Origin: Sphyrna mokarran
Taxonomy: Eukaryota
Direction: 5' to 3'
DNA: 64,000 nt
Assembly: GCA_024679065.1 (NCBI GenBank)
Contig: JAGIQG010000013.1
Location: 35,092,001-35,156,000, forward strand
Under the pieces are notes generated by a model, which saw only the letters and a program-made list of their open reading frames with translations, had not been told where the DNA came from and did no database searches. The position numbers and the translations under genes are program-made. Every line of letters begins with the position of its first letter. Within the stretch, counting starts at the first letter, position 1. Positions 1 through 41,400 of the stretch are shown here, piece after piece.

Positions 1-7
1 ATCTTAC

Positions 8-465
8 CTGTGCGCTTTTGAGCAAAAGTCGCAGAGATTTGTTGAGCAGATGTGACACCTTCTTTCAGCATTTCCATCGTTACAAAGATCACAGACTATC
101 CTGCAGTCGGGTCTCTTCAGATTCTCTAGCAGAACTTCATTGAGAATCAGGTGATTACTGGTCAGGCCTCGCAGACCAGCAGCGGGGACTTGCACCTCAT
201 AATCACAGACTGGACACAGGACGCAGGCCCCAGGTTCAGTGCAGTCTAGAGATCCCCCGGATCCAGACTCACCTTCCCCCCGTATCCTGGGCACGGAGAA
301 CTGCTCCAAGCCTCTCACACAGTCCAGGCAGAATGTATGAAGGCAAGGTAAGATCTTGGGATCAGAGTAAACGTTTTTACACATCAAGCATTTCGTTCTG
401 CAGCTCCTTGGAGGTTCTGAACTTGTCGAGCACGGTGCAAAAATCTTTCCCAGACTCTCCGACAT
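8..465 (-). CDS. TRIM45: Tripartite motif protein 45, first coding exon (C3HC4 RING + B-box 1); gene continues off the left edge
   Basis: ATG at 465. CLMC...PCLHTFCLDC...CPVC RING; CDLC...RRCHICSTNLCDFCSKAHR B-box ending at a GTAAGA donor (7-2). Neighbour of TTF2, as in other vertebrates. Confidence 0.85.
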
Positions 466-1509
466 TTTTGGACAGCACACGCTAAATTAATTCAGTTTCT
501 AAATCCCAAATATATTAAAGTTCTTAGCATCCAAAAAAAAAACCAAGCATCCTAATTGGTTGATATCAATATTTAAATAAGATTTTAAATCTGAATTTTA
601 AATACTTTTGATTGATTCTACAGCTGTCTATTGATCTACAGAGTCGAAAATATGTATTTCATATTTTAAACCTTTCCACCCTTTTCCCTACACATCAAGG
701 CAAATTCCTAATAAAGACAATTAAAAATTCAGAGTGTTAATTCATTACCAGTACTTATAATTCTTAATTCGTATGAATTGTCGTCAAACGATCAAAGCTG
801 TTAAGTTTCCAACTACTTTGTAATTAATCGTTTAATTTACAGGCATTTTTCAACATTATAATGTAGACCACCAACTACATAGTATCAAACTGCACCGTTC
901 GAATGTCTTCCTACTAAATATAAAGTCAAACTTTTTCTAGTCTCAAGCCCCAACACATTCCCCGTTCTTTACTCAACCAGAACAACCAACTCCGGCAACT
1001 TTTGTTTCCCTATACTTTCCCTGTTGTTTGTGCAAAGTCAAGTTCTGCTGCAATCAAGTAAGAACGAGTTGTTAAATTAGACCACATTAAAATTTCCAAA
1101 GGGAAGAGAGTTCCAACGAAAACCTGAAAACTTTTCTCCCAAGTTCGTCACTTTCAAACATTCCCTAACTCTTCTTGTGATTGACGGACAGGCAAGTCAA
1201 TCAACAGCGTCTCACACCCACCCATCCACCAATCGAAAACAGGGAGGCTGGATTACCCAAAGCTCGGAACTTTTTCCCTGAGACGAGAGGTTCCTCCAAG
1301 CTTCAAGCAGTGGTGATTGGGCGCTGATGCCAATGCTGGTTGGAGGACTAGTGGCAAGGCATCGAGCCCATCCAAGTAGTTCCATGTGTGTTTACAAAAG
1401 TCAATTATACCTGTCATATTTGCACCAAAGTAAACCATTAAACATTTTGAAAATATAAAACAACATTTGTGAACAAATAAGTCAACATTTCATTGACGAA
1501 AGGCTTATC

Positions 1510-7829: not shown

Positions 7830-7980
7830 CTTGCTCTCTGAGTCAGGCAGTGGTAAATTGTCCACACGCACCTCCTGAGTGACAACTGATGTGACGTACC
7901 GGGCGCTACAACCTCAAGAACCTTCCAGTGATTTTTCTTTTTTTCAGAATACCAGCAGCTCTGTAACACCGGTGAGAGAG
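7830..7980 (+). promoter_or_regulatory. Putative promoter of the VJ-C1 receptor gene
   Basis: AP-1 TGAGTCA 7839-7845, E-box CAACTG 7883-7888, CRE-like TGACGTA 7892-7898, all within 150 nt of the ATG; motif matches only. Confidence 0.4.
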
Positions 7981-8026
7981 ATGGGTGCAGTTGGATACAT
8001 TCTCAAACTCTGCCTCTGTGTCGTAG
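7981..8026 (+). CDS. VJ-C1 receptor exon 1: signal peptide [15 protein letters not shown](G)
   Basis: ATG, hydrophobic core, phase-1 donor G|GTAAGG, 91-nt intron as in Ig/TCR split leaders. Confidence 0.85.
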
Positions 8027-11000
8027 GTAAGGATTTACTTGGACTCCAGTTAACAGTAATTCTGGTTGTACTCAGATTATTTGGGTTTAATTATTATGCT
8101 ATAATTTTATGTTTCAGGACCTGTTGTCGGCCTGAACGTGACTCAGTTTCCTTCAGTTCTGTCCCTCCTGACAGGACAGACAGCTCGAATAAGTTGCACC
8201 CTGATACCCGGAGAGGAGCGGGTGGGTGAGATGAGATATTATTGGTATAGGGCAAGAGACAACCCGAACATCAGAGGCAACGCATCCAAGAATAACCTCC
8301 AGAAAAGCTCTCGCCTGTCCCCATCTGAGGGTTCACTTGTCATTCGGCAGGTGACTCTGGACGATTCCGACACTTACCACTGCGTGGTTCTTAGAGTGGC
8401 CCCTAAGCCCTGGAAAAACTTTGTAGGAGAAGGAACAAAACTGAACATTCAAGGTAATTAGAAAATAAAAACAGAAAATACTCTTCAGCTCCGACAGTCT
8501 CTGTGGAGACAGAACTGATTTAACATTTCAGATAAATGACCCGGCTAATAAATTTTTAAATGATGACATCTCTACCTTCTTCCAGTTCTGGCATCCGCAG
8601 TGAAAAGTTTTTGGAGGGGGGAGATAGAGAGAAACTATTCCCACTGGAGGCAGTGTCCAGTACCATAGAATACTGATTTAAGACCAATGTCAAAAGTAGC
8701 AGAGGTCACAAAGGAATTTATATTTTCTTACTGTGGAATACACTGTCGGAGAGGCGTTAAGAGAGTACATATTCGTGACTATTGTAAAAATCTGGAGCGG
8801 GACTCGCTGAGTTATGCCACATGGCCAAATAGCCTCCTCCTGTGCTCTAACCATTCTGATTCACCAATTAGATTAAGGCTCACTGAAATAGTACGATATG
8901 TGGATAAAAAAAACACAAGTCTAACCTGAAGTGGCATGCTCTGTGTACTGGGGCTAGAGTGAACATACCCGCCTTTAGCTTTATTGTCACAATAACCACG
9001 GGGGCTTTCAGATCATCTTCAAAACTTAGTTTGAAGAAAAACGGCCAAAAGACAAAGTTGTGTAATATTGACATCAGTCCTAACAGCGGAATATAATTTA
9101 TCTAACAAGCGGATTGCAAAGAGAGAAACCGGTCTATGTGAAATAATTATCTTTTTTTTACATTTCATTAACAATGCGGCTCCAAAAAACACAAACTGAA
9201 TTTGTGCCCGAATTACACTTATTACAAGGTCACTGCGTTGCATTTTCCTTCCTTGTTTTGTAATTAATCAAACAAATTCTGCAGTTTTTATCAAAGTTGT
9301 ACAGAGTTAAATCTTTCTTGCAGTCGTTCTGTGTATTTTACAACGAAGATTGATAGATTTTTTTAATATTTTGTTCATTTAGCCAAACCTGAAATCTCTC
9401 TTTCTGCGGATCCCGAGAAAGAAACAGTTGGATTTCCATCTCTGATTTGTTTGGCTGCGGGGTTTTTTCCCAGTAATCTGAGCATTTCCTGGATTGTTGA
9501 GGGAGATGTCTCCTATCAAACTGAACAGGGCTTGCTGATAGTAAACAGTGACGGCAGCTACAACCTGAGCTCCCGGCTGCACATTATAGACACTCACTGG
9601 GACCAGGGAACCACCGTCATTTGTGAGGTTCAACACATCACACTCCCTGAGCCAGAGAGGATACGTTTCAGCCATAGCAGAGGTAAGTGATTCAAATAAA
9701 TTAGAAAGATCGAAATTAAGATTAGGAACAGAAAGCATGCTAATAGCAGGTGTCAGGTAGAAAACCCATTAGTGAATCATGAGGCATACAGAAGGTTCAG
9801 AGGGGAGGTGGAAAAACACGAGAGAAACGGGAGGGATTATGAGAAAAAATTGAGATTAAGTTGTGTAGGGCCCCTTCGGGATGAGCGGCCATAATATGAT
9901 AGAATTATTCATCAAGAGTTGATTTTGAGGTCCTGAATCTAAAAGAAAGTACGATGGCAGGAGGTGTGAGTTGGCAATGATGGTTTGGGAAACGTTATTT
10001 AAAAGGGATGATGGTAGATAGACATTGGCAAAGATTCAAAGAGCACATTGGTGACCCCCAACATTTGTTCATTCCAATCTGATGCAAAATTAAAATGGAA
10101 AAGTTGGCCAAACCATTGGCTTAGGAAAGAAATTAGAGATACTATTAGATCCAAAGAAGAGGCATACAATCTGACCAGGAAAAAAACAACAGCCCTGAGG
10201 ATTGGGAGCTGTTTAAAATTCAACAATCGAGGACAAAATGATTGATTAAGAAGGGATAAATGGAGTATGAAAGTTAGCTTGTAGAGAACAGAGAGAGGGA
10301 TTGTTTGAACTCATGGCTGCGGGGATGGTGCAGGAGGGAGGGGTTCAGGTTCCTGAACAATTGGGACTCATTCTGGGATAGGTGGGACCTCTACAAGAGA
10401 GATGGTCTACACCTGAACCAGAGGGGAACCAATATCTTGGGGGGAAAATTTGCAAAGGCTATGCAGGGGGCTTTAAACTGATTCAGAGGGGGGGTGGGAT
10501 CCTGAGTAGTTGGGGTGCTAAGAGGGACGAGAATAGGGGGGTCATAGAGGAGAACTGTAAAACACAGCAGCGTACGGGTGGAGTAGGGCATGGTTTGAAA
10601 TGCGTATACTTTAATGCAAGAAGTATTCGCAGTAAGGTGGAGGAACTTGCAGCTTGGACCAGTACCTGGAACTTCGATGTTGTGGCCATTTCAGAGACTT
10701 GGGTAGAGCAGGGACAGGAATGGTTGTTGCAGGTTCCGGGGTTCAAATGCTTCAGTCGGAGTAGAGAAGGAGGTAGAAGGGGGGGAGGAGTGGCATTATT
10801 AGTCAAAGACTGTATCACAGTGACAGAAAAGAAGTTTGATGAGGACTTGTCTGTTGAGGTAGTATGGGCTGAGATTAGAAACAGGAGAGGAGAGGTCACC
10901 CTGTTGGGAGTCTTTTATAGACCTCCTAAAAGCTCTAGAGAGGTAGAGGAAAGGATTGCAAAGTCGATCCTGGACAGGAGTGAAAGTAATAGGGTAATTG

Positions 11001-14000
11001 TTATGGGGGACTTTAACTTTACTAATATTGATTGGAATAGCTATAGCTCTAGTACGTTAGAGGGGTCAGTTTTTGTACAAAGTGTGCAGGAAGGTTTTTT
11101 GACTCAGTATGTAGATAGGCCAACTAGAACATAGAACATAGAACATAGAACATTACAGCACAGAACAGGCCCTTCGGCCTTCGATGTTGCGCCGACCAAT
11201 ATAAAAAGCAATGCCCCTCCAAACTAAACCATTCCCTTCTCTTCCATATACTTATCAACTAACCTCTTAAACGCCACCAAACTTGGCGCATCTACAACTG
11301 CTGCAGGCAGGGCATTCCACTCCCGAACCACCCTTTGGGTAAAGAACCTACCTCTGATATCCGTCCTATAACTATCACCCATTAATTTAAAGCTGTGTCC
11401 CCTCGTGCTAGCTTTTTCCATCCTAGGAAAAAGGCTATCACTGTCCACCCTATCTAAACCTCTAATCATCTTATGTTTCGATCAGGTCCCCTCTTAGCCT
11501 CCTCCTTTCTAACGAAAACAACCTCAAATCCCTCAGCCTCTCCTCATAAGACCTGCCTCCATACCAGGCAACATCCTGGTAAACCTCCTCTGTACCCTCT
11601 CCAATTCCTCCACATCTTTCTTATAATGCAGGGACCAGAACTGTACACAATACTCCAAGTGCGGCCGCACTAGAGTTTTGTACAGTTGCAACATGACGTT
11701 GCGGCTCCGAAATTCAATCCCTCTACCAATAAAGCCAAGACTCCATATGCCTTCCTAACAACCTTCTCGACCTGACTGCCTACTTTCAGGGATCTATGCA
11801 CATACACACCAAGATCCCTCTGTTCATCTAAACTACTAAGAATCCTACCATTTGCCCTATACTATACACATTTATTATTTCTGCCATAGTGCATTACCTC
11901 ACACTTTTCCACATTAAACTCCATTTGCCACCTCTCAGCCCAGCTCTGCAACTTGTCCAAGTTCCTCTGCAAACTATAACACCCCTCTTCACTATCTACC
12001 ACTCCACCGACTTTAGTGTCATCTGCAAATTTACTAATCCTAAGGTGAGGTGAACTAGAGGTGAGGCTACATTGGATTTGGTGCTGGGCAATGAGCCAGA
12101 CCAGGTGTTAGGCTTGGAAGTTGGTGAACATTTTGGTGATAGTGACCACAATTCGGTTATGTTCACCTTAGTGATGGATAGGGATAGGCATGAATCTGGG
12201 GGCAGTAGTTATAGCTGGGGGAATGGTAATTATGAGGCCATAAGGAGAGAATTAGGGTGCATAGGTTGGAGTAGTAAATTACAGGGACTGGGAACATCTG
12301 AAATGTGGAGCTTATTCAAGGAGCAGCTGCTGCGAGTCCTTGATAAGTATGTCCCTGTCAGGCAAGGAGGAAACGGTCGAGTAAGGGAGCCATGGTGTAT
12401 GAAAAAAGTTAATTCACTGGTTAAAAGGAAAAAAGAGGCTTATGTCAGGATGAGGCTTGAAGGCTCAGTTAGTGCAATAGATAGCTATAGATTAGCCAGG
12501 AGGGAGCTAAAGAGTGAATTGAGGAGAGCTAAGAGAGGACACGAGAAGACTTTGGCTGATAGGATTAAGGAGAATCCTAAAGCTTTCTTTAGATATGTTA
12601 AGAATAGAAGATTGGTTAGGACAAGATTATGGCCAGTCATAGACAGCAGTGGGAAGTTGTGCGTGGAGCCTGAAGAGATTGGAGAGGTACTGAATAAATA
12701 TTTCTCTTCGGTATTCACGCAGGGTGATGTAAATGTAGTTATGGAGAACACTGAGGTACAGGGTAGCAAACTGGAAGGTATCGAAGTAGATAGGGAGTAT
12801 GTGCTAGATATTCTCGAGGGTTTGAAGTTGGATAAGTCCCCTGGTCCGGACGGGATTTACCCTAGGCTTCTCTGGGAGGCAAGAGAGGAGATTGCAGAGC
12901 CTCTGGCTCTGATCTTCAGGTCGTCGTTGGTTACGGGTGTGGTTCCGGAGGACTGGAGGATAGCGAATGTGGTCCCATTTTTCAAGAAGGGGAAGAGAGA
13001 CCTTCCAGGGAATTATAGGCCAGTGAGTCTTACTTCTGTTGTGGGCAAAGTATTGGAGAGAATTATTAGGGATAGGATTTATAGTTATTTAGAGAGAAAT
13101 GAATTGATTGGGGATAGTCAGCATGTTTTTGTGAAGGGTAGGTCGTGCCTTACTAACCTTATTGAGTTTTTTGAAAAAGTGACCAAAGAGGTGGATGGGG
13201 GTAAGGCAGTTGATGTGGTATCTATGGACTTTAGTAAGGCGTTCGATAAGGTGGCCCATGGAAGGCTTCTGCAGAAAATGCAGATGTATGGGATAAAGGG
13301 TGATTTAGCTAATTGGATTAGGAATTGGCTAGCAGATAGAAGACAGAGGGTGGTGGTTGATGGGAGATATTCATCGTGGAGTTCGGTGACGAGTGGTGTG
13401 CCTCAGGGGTCTGTTTTTGGGCCCCTGCTGTTTGTAATTTTTATAAATGATCTGGATGAGGGTATTGAATGATGGATTAGTAAATTTGCAGATGACACTA
13501 AAGTCGGTGGAGTGGTAGATAGTGAAGAGGGGTGTTATAGTTTGCAGGGAGACTTGGACAAGTTGCAGAGCTGGGCCGAGAGGTGGCAAATGGAGTTTAA
13601 TGTAGAAAAGTGTGAGGTAATTCACTTTGGCAGGAATAACAAATGTGTAGAGTATAGGGCTAATGGTAGGACTCTTAATAGTATTGAAGAACAGAGGGAT
13701 CTTGGTGTATGTGTGCATAGATCCCTGAAAGTTAGCAATCAAGTCGATAAGGTTGTTAAGAAGGCATAAGGAGTCTTAGCTTTTATTGGTAGGGGGATTG
13801 AATTTCGGAGCCGCAACGTCATGTTGCAACTGTACAACACTCTAGTGCGGCCGCACTTGGAGTATTGTGTGCAGTTCTGGTCCCCACATTATAAGAAAGA
13901 TGTGGAGGCATTGGAGAGGGTACAGAGGAGGTTTACCAGGATGTTGCCTGGTATGGAGGGCATGTCTTATGAGGAGAGGCTGAGGGATTTGAGGTTGTTT

Positions 14001-17000
14001 TCGTTAGAAAGGAGGCGGCTAAGAGGATACCTTATCGAAACATATAAGATGATTAGAGGTTTAGATAGGGTGGACAGTGATAGCCTTTTTCCTAGATGGA
14101 GAAAGCTAGCACGAGGGGACACAGCTTTAAATTAAGGGGTGATAGTTATAGGACGGATATCAGAGGTAGGTTCTTTACCCAGAGGGTGGTAAGGGTATGG
14201 AATGCCCTGTCTGCGGCAGTTGTAGATGCGCCAAGTTTGGTGGCGTTTAAGAGGTTAGTTGATAAGTTTATGGAAGAGAAGGGAATGGTTTAGTTTGGAG
14301 GGTCATTGCTTTTGTTTTCATAATTGGTCGGCGCAACATCGAAGGCCGAAGGGCCTGTTCTGCGCTGTAATGTTCTATGTTGTATAAAAAAGGCTAGTTT
14401 TTTGTATTTATATTTTAAAAACATAAAAAAAGTTTCTATAGTTATGTGAAGATAAATTACACTCAGAAACAAGAGAATTTAGAATAGGGAACAAATAAAT
14501 TACTGATCCCAACTAAATACATACTTTGTTTCTGACTTCACAAAAGACGACACAAATAACATAGCAGAAATTTTGGGGAGCACAATGTTTAGCGAGAGGG
14601 AAGAATGGAAGGAAACCAGTATTATTAGGGAAGTTATATTGGGAAAATTGATGGGACTGAAGCCTGACAAATCCCCAGGGCCTGATAATCAACTTCCCAG
14701 AGAAGAGGCCCTAGAAATAATGGATGCATTTAAGGTCACCTTCCAAGATTGTATACTCTGGATCTGTTCCTACAGATGGAGGTTAGCTAATGTAACTCCA
14801 CTATATTAAAAGGAAGACAGAGAAAAATGGAGAATTATAGAGCAGGCAGCTTGATGTTGGTAGTGAGGAAAATTCTAGAGTTAATAATAAAAGATTTAAT
14901 AGCAGAGCACTTAAAAACAGTGACAGAATTGGACAGAGTTAGCTTGGATTTAAGATGAGGAAAAATGTGTTTGATAAATTTTTGATAAATCTACTGGAAT
15001 TCTTCAAGGATGTAACTAGTAGGTTTAGTGAGAGGAAGCCCATGGATGTTGTTTAATTGGACCACTAGAAGGCTTTCAGCAAAGTCCCACATAAAAAATT
15101 AGCTTGTAAAATTAAAGACTGTGGGATTAGTATATTGAGATGGACAGAAAACTGGTTGGCAAACAGAAAACAAAGAATAGGAATAAACACATCTGTTTCC
15201 AAATGACAGGCAGTGACTAGTGGTGAACCACAGGGATCACTGCTGGGTGGCATGCTGCCTCATAGCGCCAGCGGCCCGAGTTCAATTCCAGCCTTGGGTA
15301 ACTGTGTGGAGTTTGCATATTCTTCCTGTGTATGAATGAATTATCTTTGAGTGCTCTGATTTCCTCCTGCAATCAAAGATATGCAGGTTCAGTGGATTGG
15401 CCATGCTTAATTGCCCCTTAGTATCCCAAAATATATTGGTTAGATGGATTAGCCATGGTAAATGCACAAGGTTATGGGGATAGGATAGGAGATTGGGCCT
15501 AGGTAAGATGCTTTTTCAGACTCAATGGGCTGAATGGCCTCCTTCACCATTATAGGAAATTTGTGGATCCCAACTATTCACCATATACACAAGATTTAGA
15601 GGATGAACTAAATGTAATATCTCCATGTTTGCAGATGACACAAAGCTGGGTGGGAGAGTGGGCTGTGAGGAGGATACAGAGGTGCTTCAGTGTGATTTAT
15701 ACAAGCTGAATGGGCAAATGCATGGCAGACATAGTATAATATGGATAAATGTGAGGTTATCCACTTTGGTAGCAAAAATAAGAGGGCAGATTATTATCTG
15801 AATGACTTTAGATTGAGACAGGGGAATGCACAATAAGACATAGGTGTTCTTGTTTACCAATTGCCGAAGGTAAGCGTGCAGATGCAGCAGGCAGTAAAGA
15901 AGGCAAATGATATATTGGCTTTCATAGTGAGAAGATTTGAATAGAGGAGCAAGAATGTCTTGCTGCTATTATACAGGGCCTTAGTGTGACCACACTCGGA
16001 ATATTGCGTGCAGTTTTGGCTTCCTTTTCTGAGGAAGGATGCTCTTGCTGTAAAGGGAGTGCAGCAAAGGTTTACCAGACTGATTCCTGAAATAATGGGA
16101 GTGATGTACAAGGAGAGATCGAGTTGGTTAGGGTTACATCCATTGGAGTTTAGAAGAATGGGAAGGGGGTGAGGGTGAGATGGGATGGGGTAGGGTGTGG
16201 GATCTCATAGAAACCTATAAAATTCTAACTGGACTAGACAAGATAGATGCAGGAAGGATGTCCCCAATAGCCAGGGAGTCTAAAACCAGGAATCACTCTC
16301 TGAGGATATTTGGGATTGAGATGAGGAGAAACTGCACAGCAAAATGGACTATTATTTAAATGGTAAAAAATGGCAGCATGCTGCTGTGCAGAGAGACCTG
16401 GGTATCCTTGTGCATGAATGGCAAAAGGTTGATTTACAAGTGCAGTAAGTAATTAAGAAGGCAAATGAAATTTTGCTAGAGGGATGGAGTTTAAAACCAG
16501 CGAGGTTATGTTAGAGCTGTATAAGATCCTGGTGAGGCCATACCCAAAGTACTGTGTACAATTTTGGTCTCCTTACTTAAGAGAGGGTATACTGGCACTG
16601 GAGGGGGTGCAGAAGAGATTTATTAGGTTGATTTCAGAGTGAGAGAATTGGCTTATGAGGAGAGACTGAATGTACAGACTATACTCATTGGAATTTAGAA
16701 GAATGAGTTGGGATCTTATAGAAGTATATAAAATTATGAAGGGAATAAATTAGAGGCAGGGAGATAGTTTCCATCTGCAGTTGAAACTAGAATGAGGGAG
16801 CATAGTCTCAAAATAAGGAGGAGCAGATTGAGGAAGAAGTTCTTCACCTAAAGAATTGTGAAGCAGTTGAGGCTACCGCTTAGAATGCTTTTAAGGCAAA
16901 GATAGATAGATTTTTGAACAGTAAAGGGTTATAGTGAGTGGGCAGGTGAGTAGAGAGACATGGTGGTGCAGTGATTGGCACTGCTGCCTCACAGTGCCAT

Positions 17001-18210
17001 GGTCCCAGGTTGGATTCTTGTCTTGGTCACTGTATGGAGTATGCACATTCTCCCTGTGTCCGTGTGGGTTTCCTCAGGTGCTCCAATTTCCTCCCATGTT
17101 CTGAAAGACGTGCTGGTTAGGTGCATTGACTCGAACAGGTGCCAGACTTGGGGAATTTCACAGTAACTTCATCGCAGTGCTAATGTAAGCCTGTGACAAA
17201 TAAATAAACCAACTTTACCTGAGTCCATGACAAGATCAGCTATGATTTTATTGAATGGCGGGGCAGGTTCAGGGGACCAGATGGCCTACTCCTGCTCCTA
17301 GTTCTTATGTTCTTATTAAATTTCTTCACCAAGATAGTGGCGAGCTTGTGGAATTCTCTACCACAAAGTAGTTGAGATCAAAATATTGTATGTTCTCAAG
17401 AAGGAGGTCGATATAACTTTTGGACCTGAAGAAGTTTCCTGTTGTGGGGTTACAGGTGGGAAGAAAAGGAGGGGACAGGCTATTGAGCTGAATAATCAAT
17501 CATGATCATAATTAATGGCAGGCTCTCAAAGCTAAATGGGCTACTCCTTTTGCTATGTTTCTCTGGAATTCCAAAGTCTTTGATAGGCCTGTAAGTAATA
17601 AAATGACAGTAAAAGGAGGAGTAGGGCTCATTAGGGATCAAAAAGCAAATTTACATGCGGACTCTGGGGGCATGGCTGAAGTATTAAATTAATACCTTAC
17701 ATCGTTTTTACTGAGGTAGTTGCTATCCAAGCCATGGAGACAGACAAGGAAACTTTGTTGAGGGGTTCAAAATTGATAAGTAGAATGTGTTGAAATGGCT
17801 GTCAGTGCTGGCCTAGTTGGTACACCTCAGTTCAATTCAGGGAGGTGGTAGTGCGGTGAATTTTGTTTACATCAGGAATATTGCAGGATAGTAATCTTTT
17901 ACTGGCAGATTCATGTTTGCGAGCAGATACTCAGATATTTATTGAAAAGATACACAGATCAGTACAGACTGTAATCTTATTTCAAAATAAACCAAATTTT
18001 TTGAATCATAAATGAACCATGGTGCTTTAAAAATGCATTTCTATCCCATATTCATCAAGCATATATTTAGACTACTCCTGAAGTAGTATGAAGTATATGA
18101 ACTCAGTGAAGTATTTTACTAGAGCTACAACAGGACGAGGTCAGTGGTTAAATACTGCCTATTTGTGAGCAACCCCAATGTTTACTGTGTGAATTCTAAG
18201 ATATATGTTA

Positions 18211-18249
<39 letters not shown>

Positions 18250-21200
18250 AGGGGGGAGTGGAGAGGTTTGTTCCATACTTCACTCTATATCATTACAAAT
18301 ACACAGATTAATTGTAGGTGAGAAGGCAAACATTTTAAGCAATTCCTTAGGAAATAAACAATGTCATTTGGGCATTTTCTCTTGTTGCAATCTAATCATA
18401 ACAATATGGCTGAAAATCACGGCCTGGTTTCTTCACTTAGAAAATAACAACTAATTCCTTTCTTTCTGCACCATTTTCTACTAAATCAAATCGTTTCCAA
18501 TATTATTATGTTGCTGCCCTTTACATACTGTGTAGAATTTCTCGCAGAATCAGCTCAAAGATCTAATTACTCATATGATAACAATCCTCCCAGATAATAA
18601 CCAACATTTAACTTGGTCCCCTCAAACCACCAAAGTACTACTTGTGAGTCAATTGAAGAGTAGAATTTAATTTTAAAATTAATTAAAATGTGATTAATTA
18701 TAGTTTTAAAATGACTAACTAAATTATACTGCAGCATATCACATCTCAAAAATGGTGTGGAGATTCAGCATTGGACTGGGGTGGGCATAATAAGAAGTTT
18801 CACAACACCAGGTTAAAGTCCAACAGGTTTATTTGGTATTATGAGCTTTTGGAGCATTGCTCCTTCATCATTCATCTGATGATGAAGGAACAGTGCTCCG
18901 AAAGCTCATGATACTAAATTAAACCCATTGGACTTTAACCTGGCATTGTGAGACTTCTTACTGTGCTCAAAAAGGGACAACCTCTAATTAAAAGCAATTT
19001 AATTTACACATAATTATACTGAATATTTTAATAATGAAATACAAATTGCGTAACTGATGAATAGTAAATCTATTATTGTTTATTTATAGTTAATAAGGAA
19101 AGGACAATGGTATATAGTGGCACAGTGGTTTGCACTGCTGCCTGACAGTGCCAGGGATTCGGGTTCAATTCTGGCCTTGGGTGACTTGCGGAGTTTGCAT
19201 ATTCCCCCCATTTGTATGAACTTTCTTTGGATGCGTCCCACAGTCACAAAGTGTGCAGATCGGGTTGATTGGCCATATTAAACTGTCCCTTAGTGTCAGG
19301 GGTACTGGCAAGATAAATACGTGAGGCTACGGGGATAGGGATTGAGTTGGATTGCCGTCAGTGCAGGCTTGATGGGTCAAATAGCCTCCTTTTGCACTGT
19401 GGCGATTCTATGATTGATTGAAAGACGCTGCAGTAGAAGTGGTCCAGTTCTCTCCAACAGTGGATCCCCCAAAGATGAGAATGAGAATGGTCCCACATTA
19501 TTCTGGAATACACCTCTAATTGAAATAAACAAGCTGCTCACAGTTTTGGCAATTTGTCAGGAAAAATATCCAGAATAATCCAAGCCTTCAATTTTTAAAA
19601 TATAAATTTCCCATTTGTTGTCAATGCAGTACAGTGGACATTTGATATTTGATAACGAGTGAACTTGATACGTGTGCAGAAAGGGGGACAAAACATGCAT
19701 TTCGAGGAAATCAAGTAACTGAGACAGAGATGGTCAGGAACCTGGACAAAAAAAACTGAGCAGATGGAAAGTAGGATAGACAAATAGTAAAAGAACCTGA
19801 TTCTTGAATAACGTGTAGATAAACAGATTCCATATGCTGCTAGTGTGCGAGTCAGTCAACCTTAACCTTTAAAAAGTAGCCGTACAGAACCTTTGAAACT
19901 TTACCTGAGATCCAGAAAACAATTTTTTTCTCCGTTTGTAGGTCTGCTTGTACCTATACAGTCACCCACGAGATTGACAGATGCTGTTCATCTATATTCA
20001 AAAATTAAAACTACATTTATAAGTATTGCTCATGGTGTGATCCACAGAGTTTTGGCTAGTATACACAATTGGCAGATTCATGTGATTTGGAATATTACTC
20101 CATGAATCAGTTTACCATATTGATCCAAAAATAGTTTTTTTCTCTTCCTATTCCCAATTCTTAGCAAAATCGGGTAGCCACATTGATTGGTTAGCGATTC
20201 CAACGTTAAAACTAGTGTCCTGTTAGATGCCTGTCTTTGCTGGAGTATGTCACATTAAAAAATTTAAAAGTTTTACTGTGTCTGAACAGAGGGAGACTGA
20301 AACCGAGACGCGCACTTTAGAAACCAGTTACCAAAAGGAAAATGCTGGAAAATCTGAGCTGGTTTTTTCGAGTCCAGGTGACCTTAAAGGATCATCTGGA
20401 CTCGAAATGTCAGCATTTTGTTCTCCTCAGCGATGCTGCCAGACTTGCTCAGATTTTCCAGCATTTTCCCTTTTAGTTTCAGATTGCACATCCGCAGTAA
20501 TTTACTTTTATCCTGGAAGCCAGTTAGGTGTTTAACCAGTGCTTTCACTAAAACTGAAAGTTTACAAATATTAGAGGGCAATGAGGCGTCCTGTTTAAAT
20601 CGGCGAGACAATTAATGTGGGGAAAATGTGGTGCGTTATTTTAATTAAACATGGGAGAACAAATTGATCGGGTTGAAATAGATGAATCAAAGCACAACTG
20701 CGTACTGCGTTCTGGAGTAGCAAAGTATCTTTTCTTGTCTGACAATCTGCTGCTTAATCAACTTCACAGATTAAAGACGGACGCGTAAAATAAATATCAA
20801 GTTCAAGTCACAAGAGACACTCAGTTACGCTAATTGATCTACGGTAGCACGAGTCGCCACCATTAAAATATGCTCAGACCATTTAGCTATGAAGCCGAAG
20901 ACAGTGAAACTTGGGAAATATCTATGATAGACCTGAATTAGTTATTTTGACGAAGGGATTAATTAAGTTAAAGTAAAAATCTGCGTTTAAAGAAAATCAG
21001 AAGAATTTCTTATGGGCGAACAAGTTGTTACAACCAAATGATTTCACCCTATGTACTCCAATTGTAGCTAACTGGTCCATCCCAGAAATTGTTCGCTACT
21101 TCATAATCTTTGTGGGAATAAGTTTGATGCTGGCGGCAATGATCTGCGTTCAGAATTTCAAAAAAAAATGGTAAGTAGTTAAATTTAACATTTTTGTGAT

Positions 21201-21262
21201 AAGCGTGTGCATGATTCTAATGTACTGTGTTTTGTTCTTTAATATCCGGCAGTGACAAATGA
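7981..21262 (+). CDS. Non-rearranging antigen-receptor-like IgSF gene, L-VJ-C1-TM(Arg)-short tail, 264 aa; join(7981..8026,8118..8453,9383..9682,21068..21170,21253..21262)
   Basis: All four introns GT-AG with matching phases 1,1,1,2. The 795-nt spliced frame is open from ATG to TGA, with canonical V and C1 residues and a hydrophobic TM followed by KKK. Confidence 0.8.
8118..8453 (+). CDS. VJ-C1 receptor exon 2: leader end + germline-joined VJ Ig domain
   Basis: tttcag acceptor; LNVTQFP...GQTARISC...YYWYR...[17 protein letters not shown]...[11 protein letters not shown]; phase-1 donor GTAATT. Confidence 0.92.
9383..9682 (+). CDS. VJ-C1 receptor exon 3: C1-set Ig domain
   Basis: AKPEISL...[17 protein letters not shown]...[12 protein letters not shown]...[16 protein letters not shown]; 300 nt, phase 1 at both ends, donor G|GTAAGT. 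Confidence 0.92.
9695..9700 (+). terminator. Candidate intronic polyadenylation signal for a secreted isoform
   Basis: AATAAA 4 nt after the in-frame TGA (9688-9690) reached by reading through the C1 donor. Confidence 0.35.
10290..14380 (+). mobile_element. Young CR1 LINE: end of ORF1, APE endonuclease, RT, 3' tail
   Basis: ORFs 10382-11134 (NARSI, ISETW, GDFN), 12072-13472 ([23 protein letters not shown]), FADD, RPHLEYC; few stops. Confidence 0.95.
11128..12040 (-). mobile_element. 5'-truncated CR1 of the same subfamily, inserted antisense into the host CR1
   Basis: (CATAGAA)n tail at 11128-11152; reverse complement of ~13474-14380; AACTAGA repeated at 11122-11128 and 12053-12059. Confidence 0.92.
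18213..18248. repeat. (TG)n microsatellite
   Basis: About 18 TG units. Confidence 0.95.
18745..18973. mobile_element. Palindromic mini-element made of two back-to-back Penelope pLTR ends
   Basis: Left arm is the reverse complement of the right arm around ~18872; CTCAAAAA repeated at 18745-18752 and 18966-18973. Confidence 0.85.
18872..18911 (+). ncRNA. Minimal type I hammerhead ribozyme motif (Penelope pLTR)
   Basis: TCAT-CTGATGA-(helix II)-GAAA-GC-TC-ATGA: core boxes, helix I TCAT/ATGA, palindromic AGCT. Confidence 0.6.
19115..19415 (+). mobile_element. HE1-like V-SINE
   Basis: tRNA head, V core, CR1-type tail ending gattctatgatt. Confidence 0.8.
21068..21170 (+). CDS. VJ-C1 receptor exon 4: short stalk + transmembrane segment with Arg
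   Basis: ttgtag acceptor; (A)[33 protein letters not shown]; perfect donor TG|GTAAGT; phase matches exon 3. Confidence 0.8.
21253..21262 (+). CDS. VJ-C1 receptor exon 5: tail end (C)DK-stop
   Basis: 82-nt intron with ttctaat branch-like motif, pyrimidine tract and CAG; T GAC AAA TGA. Confidence 0.6.
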
Positions 21263-24720: not shown

Positions 24721-26277
24721 TAAAATTTTAATTCTCCTTGCCATTTGTTCTGTATGTTCAACCTGTCTGACCACATTATAAATGCATCTTCCTTGGTCAT
24801 CAAGTGCTGGAATGGGACTCAAACCCAGAACTTCTGGCTCAGAGGGAGGGACACTGTCCACTGTTCCAGATTTAGTTATAAGCTGGAGTAATTGATCACT
24901 TCAGTTCTTATAACTAAATGCAAGGAAGCACATTTTTTAAAATTAGAATATAAATCAAGCTCCCATTTCCCAGATGGAGGTCCAAACAATGCAGATTACA
25001 TTAAGTTAAATTGTTTTGATTTAAGCTACATTTTGGTGATGTTTGACTCTATGAAAACTTTAAAACTCATTCAGTTAGCAAACAAGACTGAAAATTTAGT
25101 GTAAATTTGTGCTGAACTGTTGGCAGTTTGTGGGTTCATTTTCCACTTATAAAGCTTACCTAAATTTCATAAAGAGGCCTTTTATCAGCAATGGAAAATT
25201 CTTTGAAATCTGAGCAAACATCAAAGCTGCACATCTCAGATACTACATTTAATTCCTTAATTTTGAAGTCACATTTGATTTGTTTTTGACCTCACTTATG
25301 CCATCTTGGAGACAGCTTTTTACTGCCTCCGTTAACATAATCCAGACTCAGCTCATGTGCTGCTGAAATCTTGACCCCATACTTATCTTTAGATTTGACT
25401 ACTCCTGACTGGTCTCCCATCTCCTACCATTCTTGGTCATCTAAAACTCTGCTGCCAGTGTCTTAAGGTGCAGAGGATCCTGTTCCCCTATCCCCCTCAG
25501 CTCAGAGTTGAGCAATATCTTGATTTAAAAATTCTTATTTTCAATTCCTTCCATTAGTCTTGCTCCTCCATCTCAGTGATCTTTCCAGCAACACAACTCT
25601 GATTTCTGCACTTTTCTGATACCAGTCTTTTGTGCATTCACAACACTGATGTCTTCAGTTACCTAAGCTCAAACACTAGAATTCAGTTTCTATTCCTCTA
25701 AACCTCACTTTCCTCCTTTTAAGGCACTTAAAATCTACCCCTTTGACAGTAAGCTTTTAATCATCTGACTCAACATTTCCTTTTGTGGTTGGTATTTGTT
25801 TTATAATGCTTACACATCTTAAATGATGTTGCAAGTGTAAAATGGATCAATTACTGAAAAACTGATCACAATCTTTTCCAAAATATTTTGCAGAAGAAAC
25901 TGTTTACTTTAATGATGAAATGTTGACTTACATTCAGTCTTTAAAAGAATAAGTGACAAGTTAAGAAACCAACATTCTGACCAAACCAAAATCACATACT
26001 TTGATTAAAAACACAAATATTTGGCTTCAGACTGAGGATGATGCAGCTTTGTATTTTGTTCCTGTAGTAGAAAATCTCACACCAACTATATAAATGACCC
26101 AACAACTTAAGGTCGTGTAACTTGCAGCATAATTACATGAAAACATCCATATTATGTTTGGCATATATATTTCTACAACACTAATTCAAATTTCTCAAAT
26201 GTGCAGATGCATTGCGCTTTGACTGTGATTTGTTAAAATGTTTGACAATTAAATTGCAGGATCATTTCTTTTGAAAC

Positions 26278-26422
26278 TCAGACACCAAACAGAATCCGAA
26301 GATCAGCCAGCGTAAGCTTGGTAAAGGATCTGCCGGTTCCTGACAGCACCTTCTTTGCTAGCTCCTTTTTCTTCTCCTGAAGATCAAAGATTTTGTCCTC
26401 AATAGTACCCTCGCATACAAAC
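26278..26422 (-). CDS. TTF2: TTF2 last coding exon
   Basis: [11 protein letters not shown]...[12 protein letters not shown]. Confidence 0.93.
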
Positions 26423-38400: not shown

Positions 38401-41400
38401 GTCAGTAGAGAATGTTAACAATCACTTGGGACAGATAAAACATCCCATCAACAGATTCTAGTTCAGTGAGCAAAATAGACAAATGGAATGTTCAACGATG
38501 AGGATAATTGAGGTTAAAAGGAAAATCTTTCTCACCAGACTACAATTACACCATTGGAATTAATAAACCATGGCAACTGAAAATGTATCATAGCTGATGG
38601 TTTTAACCTAGTATATTTGAAATACATGCTCACATTTTTGTATGAAATAATTTAAAAGCAAAATAAATAATTAACAGTGCTATATATATATGTCCATAAA
38701 TTACATCCAATTCAAAAAAACTAATGTTGGAATGCAGGTAAACTGGTCTGAAGAACTAATATTAGATGTAATAGCTCCAGATTTATCCAAAGGTATAGCA
38801 GTGATTTGTTAACTGTTTCACTTGAAGAACATTTAAATACCTACCATAATTTATTTATAGAAAAAGTCATCTGTTTCTCGATCACATTGTGGGTTCCTGG
38901 TTTAAAGACACTGCCTCTGAGGGATCAGTTGAATTGAACAATTAAACAATTCTACTGCTCCTTCTGGTGTTGTTAAATTTGCTTTCACAGTGGCATGAGA
39001 AACCATTTTCCAACAGTACAGGGATGATTTGTATGTGTACATACATAATACTGATTTGTCAGAAAAGTTGCATGTTAACTCTTCCGCATGTCTGCGCATA
39101 TGCCAGAACCAATCAGTACAACAGGAAGTTGCGTAGGAGTCTGCAATAGTACTTTGGATTCCACCTGCCCAAGATCTGAGCTATGAATAATCCGAAGCAG
39201 CTTTAATGATGCAGCTAATATACCATGAACTCCTGGAACTGAAGTACCACAGAAATAAGTGTACATTTAGATGTGTTTCACATCACTATCACTAAGATGA
39301 AGCAGTAATGGAGCAAACAGTGGGTTCTCACACAATAAGATTATGAAAAAGCAGTTTGCACTTGAACAGGGGTGTTCTCAATGTTTCACTGTTTCAGAAG
39401 CTGTCATGATGGGAACTTCAGCAGACGAGTACAACATTTTAGGAATTATAGGTGAAAGCATATTGTTGGAGGATATGGGGAAGACATACGAAAAACTACT
39501 AACACAATTGGCTGATTTCCATACCAAGTTTTCTCCTTAGCTCACAAATGAAAATGGCAACGTGATTCTTGATGATCAAGGCTATTGTGGACCTAGTTTA
39601 TAACACTTCCACATGAACCAGAGATCATGCCAAGTTCAATTTTCTCACTGCTTTGTTCATTCACTGACAGCTGAAGTAAAAATCATGCAAAACTAGGATC
39701 AGAACAAAAATAATACTTGACTGGAGTTTATGAACTGGCTGCAAGTGATAGGCTCAAATCAGCCTAATCCTTATGCAAGGGATCGCCATCTTTGTTTGGC
39801 AATGCTTTTAATTTATTTTGAATATATCACACAATGGAACAATTAAAGTTGTGTTTAAATAATCTGGCCACTTACGCGCCATTTTATCATGACAAAGATG
39901 GCAACTGTCTTTTTGGCAACTATTCCCAACATTGAGAAATTTGTTCATGTAGCATTGTTTCATCAATAGGGAATGCTAATGGCACAGTCTATTCTCAGGG
40001 AATTGGTGTAAGCCAGTGTTGTGCTGCTACTGAACAAATTTCTTCCCTTATAACCTTTTCAAGAAGCGAATTACACAAAATCTATCCTCAAAGTGGACAG
40101 AATTATCCAAAGTACATTCTATAGTTGGCAGCAATTTATATTTCAGGAGCTCTTAATTTTTCAGACAGACCTGGAATGAGCAAACAGGACATTGTAAACA
40201 CCTTCCTCATCCTCTGATAATTTTAGTCGATGAAGGCGGTTAAATTTCTGCGGTAGGGAAACCTGGACAAAGAAAACACATGTGTAAGGGAAATTCTGTC
40301 ACAAAAACTAACCATAAAGTTTACAATTATATTTTCATTAATATTTGTTTCATTTCACAAATTTTGAAACCTAATCAGAATTAAGGGTATAAGTGTTTTA
40401 GGTGTGACAGAGTTGGTGTGAGGAGAGGTGGGGGAGTGGCTTTATTAGTTAAGGACAACGTCATAGCAGTGCAGAGGGAGGGAGGTATGGATGATTTAGG
40501 AATTGAGTCTCTATGGGTGGAGTTGAGGAATAGGAAGGGAGTGGTTACTCTGTTGGGTGTTTACTACAGACTGCCCAACAGCCCGCGAGCCATGGAAGAA
40601 GGGATATGCAGGGACATTTTAGATAAGTGTAGGAAAAATAGGGTAGTAGTAGTGGGAGATTTCAATTTTCTGGAGTAGATTGGAGAGGGCCCAGAGCTGT
40701 AGGAGTGGATGGGGAGGAATTTGTACAGTGTGTTTTGGAAGGGTCCTTGGAGCAGCATGTGGATGGCCCGACTAGAGATGGGGCTATACTGGATTTGGTT
40801 CTGGGGAATGAGCCAGGCCAGGTGGTTGACGTCGAGGTAGGAGAGCAGGTGTCAAATAGTGATCACAACTCTGTCTGCCTTAGGATATTAATGGAAAAGG
40901 ATGAGACTGGCCCAAAAGGGAGGGTATTTAACTGGGGGAGGGCTAGATACGGCCAGATTAGGCAAGAGCTTAAAGATACGGATTGGGATAAGCTTTTTGA
41001 GGGCAGGTCGACGAGGTACATGTGGGAGTCTTTCAAGGGAAAACTAAACTCTCTGCAGGAAAGATATGTGCCGGCAAGGAGGAAGGATGGGAAAGGTAGG
41101 ATTAGAGAACCTTCGCTTACCAGGGAGATTGAGGACTTGATCAAGAAAAAGCGAGAGGCTTACATTAGATCTAGGCAACTAGGGACTGAGACAGCGCTGG
41201 AAGCTTATAGAGAGTGTAGACGGGATCTTAAAAGGGGGATTAGAAAGGCAAAAAGGGGCCACGAGGTGGCTCTGGCAGGTAGGATAAAGGAAAATCCAAA
41301 GGCATTTTACACCTATGTAAGGAGCAAAAGGATGGGTAGAGGCAAGATTGGACCTCTTAGGGACAGAGGAGGGGATCTATGCTTAGAGCCTGAGGGAATG

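Follow-up and report, generated by a model that had tools for sequence, protein, structure and literature searches.

A non-rearranging VJ-C1 gene of Sphyrna mokarran with a far-downstream, arginine-containing transmembrane exon: a probable activating-type member of an elasmobranch paired receptor family

RESULTS

A split-leader VJ-C1 gene in the analysed window

We analysed a stretch of 64 000 nt from Sphyrna mokarran (GenBank assembly GCA_024679065.1, contig JAGIQG010000013.1, positions 35,092,001–35,156,000 of the forward strand), which as a whole is here called the window and from the first nucleotide of which all coordinates are counted. Starting at position 7981 on the plus strand, it carries a gene for a leader, a V domain with a J-like strand in the same exon (VJ), a C1-set domain and a transmembrane (TM) segment. 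A preliminary description of this locus had proposed five exons splicing in phase to an open protein of 264 amino acids. Read exon by exon, the lengths of 46, 336, 300, 103 and 10 nt indeed add up to 795 nt, or 264 codons plus a stop, and exons 1–4 have canonical splice sites with compatible phases throughout and are backed by homology, whereas the fifth exon has no such backing. The elements of the gene, including those considered as alternative ends, are as follows.

7981–8026, plus strand: exon 1, 46 nt, starting with ATG and ending in phase 1 at the donor gtaagg; first part of the split leader plus 1 nt
8118–8453, plus strand: exon 2, 336 nt, acceptor tttcag, donor gtaatt; end of the leader and VJ-type V domain
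9383–9682, plus strand: exon 3, 300 nt, acceptor atttag, donor gtaagt; C1-set domain, ending with FSHSR plus G in phase 1
9683–9700, plus strand: read-through of the exon 3 donor, giving Gly-Lys-stop (TGA at 9688–9690), with AATAAA at 9695–9700
10382–14293, mixed strands: retroelement debris of the LINE (long interspersed nuclear element) type in intron 3 (Pfam Exo_endo_phos 7.3e-16, RVT_1 1.4e-26)
21068–21170, plus strand: exon 4, the TM exon, 103 nt, acceptor ttgtag, donor gtaagt, ending in phase 2
21253–21262, plus strand: exon 5 of the preliminary description, 10 nt, acceptor ggcag, reading T GAC AAA TGA (Cys-Asp-Lys-stop); phase-compatible, unsupported
26260–26315, plus strand: candidate ray-like terminal exon after an AG at 26258–26259, with a 17-residue tail and then a stop; matched by tblastn of the C-terminus of the ray protein P0108 at E 0.027

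The leader is split as in antigen-receptor genes, with its first part in the 46-nt exon 1, ending in phase 1, and its completion at the start of exon 2, and it resembles that of the Mustelus protein P0116 (MGAVRKILKLCLFVLG). Exons 2 and 3 are the sole V and the sole C1 exon within the 64-kb window. Intron 3, of 11.4 kb, is filled largely by LINE debris including endonuclease and reverse-transcriptase open reading frames (ORFs); part of it recurs in inverted orientation at about 11224–12002 on the minus strand, with near-identical ORFs at 11862–12002 on the minus and 13512–13769 on the plus strand. As judged from its sequence, the gene is real and intact, with more than one candidate for its C-terminus.

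Identity of the V and C1 domains

Exon 2 was identified in Pfam as a V-set domain (E 6.8e-11; 42.8 bits, the cut-off being 26) spanning profile positions 2–108 of 109, with Cys26, Trp42, the motif DDSDTYHC and a J-like G strand of the sequence GEGTKLNI, which fits the J motif GxGTxLx(V/I), all inside the single exon 8118–8453. V and J are contiguous in this exon and do not form the separate segments flanked by recombination signal sequences (RSS) of rearranging immunoglobulin (Ig) and T-cell receptor (TCR) chains; when the exact consensus strings were searched for in 7901–9800, neither a CACAGTG/CACTGTG heptamer nor a consensus nonamer was found. This agrees with the germline-joined VJ without RSS that had been proposed. 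A J-like FEGTKLNV at 18603–18623 on the minus strand, within intron 3, was judged to be a chance match (7 amino acids, E 7.2, no adjacent RSS heptamer). Among the best 60 matches of the V exon to solved structures, the closest were antibody kappa and lambda light-chain V domains (1.1e-6) and shark VNAR, with no NKp30 chain among these 60, and the earlier characterization of the V domain as NKp30-like was consequently not upheld.

C1-set domains are known only from antigen receptors, proteins related to MHC and a small number of relatives. The proposal that exon 3 encodes such a domain was confirmed, both by its Pfam score (C1-set, PF07654; E 2.4e-15, 57.1 bits, the cut-off being 21) and by three sequence criteria, as the exon carries FFP as well as CEVQH and spaces the B-strand Cys and the C-strand Trp by 13 residues. 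The criteria in question, as given in the text of Hatherley et al. (PMC2785349), are (F/Y)(F/Y/H)P where the BC loop begins, a spacing of exactly 13 residues from Cys to Trp, and xVxH following the F-strand Cys. In the PDB, IgG CH3 and UrIg2 are among the best matches of the C1 exon.

The far-downstream transmembrane exon

Exon 4 encodes a TM helix that is preceded by a short stalk bearing an NWS glycosylation site and followed by QNFKKK, with a run of nine A residues (21160–21168) preceding the donor. An Arg is the third residue of the 21-residue hydrophobic span and is thus located at the outer membrane boundary. Although ten hydrophobic 19-mers are encoded on the plus strand between 9684 and 64000, only that of exon 4 matches the TM segment of ray homologues. 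Those homologues are three RefSeq proteins in which the C1 domain runs directly into a TM segment homologous to exon 4, all of them computer predictions with arbitrary names: XP_051869794.1 of Pristis pectinata (P0100), one 'T cell receptor beta chain MC.7.G5-like' protein of Mobula hypostoma (P0108) and an 'Ig heavy chain Mem5-like' protein of Hemitrygon akajei (P0109). They share with the window gene the order of leader, VJ, C1 and TM, a direct junction of C1 and TM at the same residue position, the invariant TM positions (I-P, R, II, VG, SL, L and I) and short, Tyr-poor ends; they differ from it in being 51–61% identical in V and 51–53% in C1, and in their tails (…HTSR or SFVDRLRHQTGCGDQQE).

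Across the TM exon of the window gene and these three ray proteins, 12 of 33 columns are invariant, and the Arg is invariant in all four. Eighteen of 28 residues of exon 4 are identical to P0100 (pairwise BLASTP E 2e-11), and tblastn of the three ray C-termini against the window matched 21070–21150 at E 2.3e-8, 0.005 and 0.014. The split codon created by joining 9682 to 21068 (G|CT, Ala) falls at the exact position of the ray Asp that follows SR or NR, and the position and phase of the junction consequently agree with the homologues. Compared with the sawfish protein P0100, the TM exon is 64–67% identical, V 61% and C1 52.5%, so that the TM segment is conserved at least as much as the Ig domains, which speaks for a role beyond that of a passive anchor. 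The homology thereby supports a TM exon lying far downstream, as had been proposed, and the reading of exon 4 likewise bore out the reported residues, in that the gene has no stalk Cys, no interchain Cys and no Lys in the TM segment, which makes it an unlikely partner of a classical TCR chain.

Candidate C-termini and a possible secreted form

The preliminary description had ended the protein with a nine-residue tail, QNFKKKCDK, by way of the 10-nt exon at 21253. That ending is matched by no homologue in the family, and an AG with a nearby stop easily arises by chance. A better supported candidate was found at 26260–26315. The best six-frame match in the window to the 17-residue tail of P0108 lies at 26262–26312, 5.1 kb downstream of the TM exon and on the same strand, with a stop at the homologous place; the score of 40 at this site was reached anywhere in the window by only 1 of 500 shuffled tails. 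The tail of P0109 peaks at the same site, but here 122 of 500 shuffles reached the score, so that this second match is not significant alone. The exon at 26260 needs a phase-1 donor, which fits that of the C1 exon, and it is 1 nt out of register with the TM exon, which ends in phase 2.

Several possibilities can be envisaged for the C-terminus, namely a length error or polymorphism in the homopolymer run, a tail that is truly frameshifted, splicing to the mini-exon at 21253, read-through of the exon 4 donor (KKKW-stop), or an isoform without TM in which C1 is joined directly to 26260. All of the candidate tails are short and Tyr-free, and for that reason the assignment of the gene as activating-type is independent of the choice between them. 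Read-through of the exon 3 donor could, as judged from the stop and AATAAA that follow it, represent a possible secreted form, with none of the 21 family proteins described below having the corresponding ending, SRGK.

An elasmobranch family with inhibitory and Arg-TM members

When the V exon was compared with 1.84 billion representative proteins, 98 matches were found at E ≤ 1e-3, the top four being elasmobranch V-C1-TM proteins with 65, 63, 56 and 47% identity, and ten further ones all being named 'hypothetical', 'Ig-like domain-containing' or arbitrarily. Further searches gave 17 proteins at E ≤ 1e-10 among 1984 candidates and 18 at E ≤ 1e-8 among 8000 scored, all of them elasmobranch. Taken together, a cluster look-up and two further searches retrieved a set of 21 proteins (11 shark, 10 ray), and RefSeq contains members of the family for at least 13 species of elasmobranchs. 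The automated names that RefSeq assigns to it are in conflict with each other, including 'tyrosine-protein phosphatase non-receptor type substrate 1-like' (that is, SIRP-alpha-like), 'signal-regulatory protein beta-1-like', 'immunoglobulin kappa light chain-like', 'T cell receptor beta chain-like' and 'Ig heavy chain Mem5-like'. The gene had earlier not been recognized as a named one, and it is indeed without a curated name; it is not, however, an orphan, as it belongs to this elasmobranch family.

By the nature of their C-terminal parts, 13 of the 21 proteins have a long tail with at least one immunoreceptor tyrosine-based inhibitory motif (ITIM) or switch motif (ITSM), most of them together with an uncharged TM segment (SKYYYFSLLGLILIVPVCLWII). 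In two more, the uncharged TM segment (SKYYYFSLLGLILIVPVCLWII) is followed by a truncated tail, three are models without TM, and the remaining three, all from rays, have the Arg-TM, no ITIM or ITSM and at most one Tyr after C1. The inhibitory tails comprise about 120 amino acids, with LHYAPV, TEYAVL, VQYSAV and TxYASL as examples of the motifs. For P0110 (Heterodontus francisci) and P0111 (Heptranchias perlo), which are counted among the 13, the X2 isoforms skip the TM exon and have C1 joined to the ITIM tail (SHSG|DSSIH), with products predicted to be soluble or intracellular. TM-less gene models include P0115 and P0117 (Hemiscyllium and Cetorhinus). Some ray members (P0101, P0004 and P0121, from Hypanus sabinus and Mobula birostris) have two near-identical tandem C1 domains, which is evidence of a recent exon duplication within the family.

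The ectodomain of the window gene was found to be closely similar to those of inhibitory members, with 84% identity in V and 81% in C1 to P0116 of Mustelus asterias, and 63% in V and 73% in C1 to XP_038658211.1 of Scyliorhinus canicula (P0001). These two proteins have the same type of leader, exon boundaries that coincide to judge by protein alignment, and a similar ectodomain, and differ from the window gene in having an uncharged TM segment and a tail of about 120 amino acids with ITIM or ITSM. The 18 differences from P0116 in the V domain leave the first 23 residues unchanged and occur at residues 24–25, 36–39, 43, 49–63, 79 and 93–100; by inspection, they appear to lie mostly in or near stretches resembling complementarity-determining regions (CDRs).

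Separate trees of the V and C1 domains of the family proteins showed the ectodomains to group by taxon and not by type of TM segment. The C1 of the window gene thus groups with that of the inhibitory Mustelus protein (97/93), the activating and inhibitory C1 domains of Pristis are identical, and the activating protein of Hemitrygon groups with an inhibitory one of Hypanus (99/97), both types of TM segment being common to sharks and rays. Such a pattern fits two old signalling modules on ectodomains that would be kept alike within lineages, as in paired receptors. Inhibitory-type tails in 13 and the Arg-TM in 3 of the 21 proteins, together with the 84 and 81% identity of the ectodomain to the inhibitory P0116, make up a classic paired-receptor arrangement. 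No inhibitory-type TM or tail exons were found in the window, and the inhibitory partner should therefore be a separate gene outside of it, which is also why the pairing had escaped the preliminary description. None of the 11 retrieved shark proteins carries the Arg-TM, which makes the window gene the first shark example among the sequences compared. It may be speculated that the truncated shark models P0115 and P0117 represent similar genes for which a distant TM exon was missed. No paper was found that describes an elasmobranch VJ-C1 paired family or the three ray Arg-TM proteins, a result that is provisional as most subscription journals and supplements were outside the coverage.

Comparison with known receptor systems

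A profile of the family gave 10,090 matches at E ≤ 1e-3 among all PDB sequences. The highest rank was taken by an IgA1 entry with four matched stretches, followed by UrIg2 (9dmx; 9e-34, best stretch 61.3 bits) and, at rank 3, human SIRP-alpha (2wng; 1.9e-32), with a single stretch of 71.9 bits over V and the first C1; of the three alignments compared, that with SIRP-alpha is the best contiguous match of V and C1, and SIRP-gamma was found at rank 9. With P0116 as a single sequence, the values were 3.1e-21 for 7fjs_L, 1.5e-20 for UrIg2, 1.8e-18 for SIRP-alpha and about 1e-15 to 5e-17 for ordinary light chains, and the caecilian 'SIRP-like' protein P0043, in the same type of comparison, likewise had light chains, UrIg2 and SIRP-alpha similarly tied. 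By these scores the family seems to be about equally distant from SIRP-alpha, UrIg2 and Ig light chains, and to count it as a SIRP family would be premature.

With regard to architecture, NKp30 consists of a single V domain that continues straight into stalk and TM without a C1, and it uses CD3-zeta or FcR-gamma. The window gene shares with NKp30 (NCR3) a non-rearranging VJ-type V domain, a TM Arg and a short tail, but it has a C1-set exon between V and TM, and the likeness stops at the TM Arg. Rearranging Ig light chains and TCR chains have the same order of V, J and C1 and the same split leader, and the V exon finds its best match in antibody kappa or lambda V; they differ from the window gene, in which VJ is germline-fused without RSS, there is neither a TM Lys nor an interchain Cys, and the partners have ITIM tails.

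SIRP-beta-1 uses a Lys in the middle of its TM segment together with DAP12. In this respect it differs from the window gene, with its boundary Arg and no TM Lys, and SIRPs (2wng, 4i2x) also have two C1 domains as opposed to one in the window gene and in most family proteins; what they have in common is a C1-set domain preceded by a V-set domain whose G strand is J-like, and the presence of ITIM-bearing members beside members with charged TM and short tail. The association of SIRP-beta-1 with DAP12 is described in PMC12975943, and Hatherley et al. propose SIRP as a relative of the antigen-receptor precursors (PMC2785349).

UrIg and UrIg2, of which the window gene is not one, resemble it in their split leader, single-exon VJ, C1-type domains and restriction to elasmobranchs, and differ in having several C domains instead of a single C1 and in that no paired ITIM and Arg-TM forms have been described for them. 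According to the UrIg2 paper, UrIg and UrIg2 are the non-rearranging antigen-receptor genes retained in elasmobranchs and expressed in liver and gill, with nine C domains in UrIg2 of the nurse shark (PMC12227049), and UrIg has elsewhere been described as an MHC-linked nonrearranging VJ-C1 Ig-like gene (PMC10751288). The words SIRP and ITIM, as well as a VJ-C1 paired family, are absent from the main text of the UrIg2 paper (PMC12227049).

Other features of the window

Beyond the gene and its introns, the following features were noted.

4–480, minus strand: TRIM-like gene, represented by its first coding exon, which has a RING domain (zf-RING_UBOX 1.4e-07) and then the start of a B-box; the gene runs off the left end of the window
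40705–42797: a further LINE-type element with endonuclease and reverse-transcriptase ORFs
53270–55201, plus strand: a 643-aa ORF with a reverse transcriptase (6.4e-10) and a GIY-YIG endonuclease domain (2.6e-04)
61801–62913, minus strand: a 370-aa ORF rich in Ser, Lys and Glu, with no Pfam family and no usable Atlas match

The Atlas neighbours of the TRIM-like exon are TRIM2/3-like and PML-like clusters. The pair of reverse transcriptase and GIY-YIG domains in the 643-aa ORF is typical of Penelope-like retroelements, and the 370-aa ORF may either belong to a neighbouring gene as a large exon or be open by chance.

DISCUSSION

The exon reading, the Pfam results and the ray homologues together bear out a non-rearranging gene with split leader, VJ, C1 and TM, a conserved TM Arg and a short, Tyr-free tail. 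We consider it likely that this gene is an activating-type member of a family of paired VJ-C1 receptors in sharks and rays, having an architecture and a logic that would be analogous to those of SIRP-beta in relation to SIRP-alpha. Its product would be a receptor at the leukocyte surface and would bind the same ligand as its inhibitory partner, or a related one. Having no signalling tail of its own, it would signal through an adaptor with an acidic TM segment and an immunoreceptor tyrosine-based activation motif (ITAM) that docks on the Arg, with a chain of the CD3-zeta/FcR-gamma family or a DAP12-like chain as candidates. The differences between the ectodomains near CDR-like stretches could then fit a divergence of the activating counterpart driven by ligands or pathogens.

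A number of observations weigh against this assignment. The splicing of 9682 to 21068 is deduced from homology and phase, none of the 11 retrieved shark proteins has the Arg-TM as compared with 3 of the 10 ray proteins, and the mismatch of phase between the TM exon and the exon at 26260 could be a real frameshift and thereby a sign of early decay. An AlphaFold2 model of the ray homologue P0100 (11-row alignment; mean pLDDT 57.9, pTM 0.39) gave no support beyond the predicted TM helix. Inhibitory members also carry a basic residue at the same outer TM boundary, the Lys in SKYYYF, and the boundary Arg may merely snorkel. The TM Arg had previously been likened to the one by which NKp30, NKp46 and TCR alpha recruit CD3-zeta or FcR-gamma; it is invariant in the four sequences and accompanied in the window gene by a Tyr-free tail, but because of the Lys in inhibitory forms the residue alone is weaker evidence than was then assumed. 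Furthermore, FcR-gamma was reported to be absent from cartilaginous fish in the text of a 2014 survey (PMC4016189). Of the recruitment of CD3-zeta or FcR-gamma that had been suggested, the FcR-gamma part is at odds with that survey, and the adaptor may be a CD3-zeta-family or a DAP12-like chain.

Other interpretations of the gene have to be weighed against that of an activating paired receptor. It could be a true orthologue of the SIRP family, in essence a shark SIRP-beta that shares common descent with the tetrapod SIRPs and probably recognizes CD47, although we regard this as somewhat unlikely. Names of the SIRP-alpha-like or SIRP-beta-1-like type were given by the automated annotation of RefSeq to 11 of the 21 family proteins, SIRP-alpha ranked third of 10,090 with the best stretch over V and C1 among the three alignments compared, the linker GTxLxVxAKP and the CEVxHVT motif can be aligned, and the logic of inhibitory and activating pairing with ITIM tails is the same. 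In comparisons of single sequences, however, SIRP-alpha scored much like light chains and UrIg2, a single C1 domain in place of two is found in most members, and the charge of the TM segment is a boundary Arg instead of the mid-membrane Lys of SIRP-beta-1. A search with the tail of P0116 (residues 245–369), having limited sensitivity, found seven elasmobranch proteins among 61 candidates and no tetrapod SIRP, and the neighbours of the gene in the window, a TRIM-like exon and an unidentifiable ORF, give no signal of synteny. It is in our view highly improbable that the gene instead encodes one chain of a TCR-like heterodimeric innate receptor, with a second VJ-C1 chain encoded nearby; the exon layout is admittedly that of a TCR chain and C1 domains normally pair in cis, as stated in PMC2785349, but the absence of a stalk Cys and of a TM Lys, the lack of any second V or C1 domain in the 64-kb window, and nearest relatives that are ITIM-bearing receptors of the single-chain type all argue against it, and UrIg2 and SIRP as described (PMC12227049, PMC2785349) show that VJ-C1 proteins need not heterodimerize.

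Two further alternatives concern the 3' part of the gene. The main product might be a soluble V-C1 decoy or opsonin, made through read-through of the C1 donor or splicing of C1 to 26260, with the TM exon used rarely or never. The stop and AATAAA within 9688–9700, the phase of the 26260 exon, which accepts phase 1 as provided by the C1 donor and not the phase of the TM exon, as well as the TM-skipping isoforms P0110 and P0111 and the TM-less models P0115 and P0117 would be compatible with such a product. We nevertheless find it unlikely as the main one, as the TM exon is intact, correctly phased with C1 and as conserved towards the sawfish as are the Ig domains, which is hard to explain for an unused exon; AATAAA is moreover frequent in AT-rich introns, and the ending SRGK recurs in no family protein. 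Less probable still, in our judgement, is a decaying duplicate, that is an activating copy starting to lose its 3' end, to which the endonuclease and reverse-transcriptase ORFs of LINE origin in intron 3, the 1-nt phase difference of the ray-like tail exon from the TM exon as assembled, and the lack of the Arg-TM in the 11 shark proteins would lend themselves. Against this, the four exons supported by homology are open and have all the canonical Ig residues and consensus splice sites, and introns filled with retroelements are normal in shark genomes. The phase mismatch occurs at a run of nine A residues, a typical spot for an assembly length error or a polymorphism, and with all possible tails being short and Tyr-free, function would be independent of which of them is used.

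With regard to the origin of the family, it can be asked whether it is a surviving membrane-bound branch of the VJ-C1 stock that preceded RAG, being a sister of UrIg and UrIg2, of SIRP and of Ig and TCR chains, and not a derived SIRP, with TCR-like signalling already present in the form of a basic TM residue docking an adaptor of the CD3-zeta family and of an ITIM-bearing twin. This reading we hold to be improbable. Non-rearranging VJ-C1 genes have been put forward as candidates for the target of the RAG transposon, as discussed in PMC12227049 and PMC2785349. If the family were such a branch, the signalling architecture of the TCR would be older than V(D)J rearrangement, sharks and rays would offer a living receptor of the non-rearranging kind in which to study it, and the TM exon at a distance of 11 kb would explain why only inhibitory or truncated forms are seen in the 11 shark models.

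For the annotation of these genomes, the results imply that the contradictory RefSeq names of the family are not to be trusted at face value, and that the great distance of the TM exon may have left the activating forms of sharks under-annotated. For the biology of the family, a VJ-C1 ectodomain combined with the pairing of ITIM and charged-TM forms across elasmobranchs places SIRP-like innate receptors at the root of jawed vertebrates, and provides a tractable pair of genes for studies of ligand recognition, of the adaptor used by a shark activating receptor and of how the likeness of ectodomains is upheld in paired receptors.

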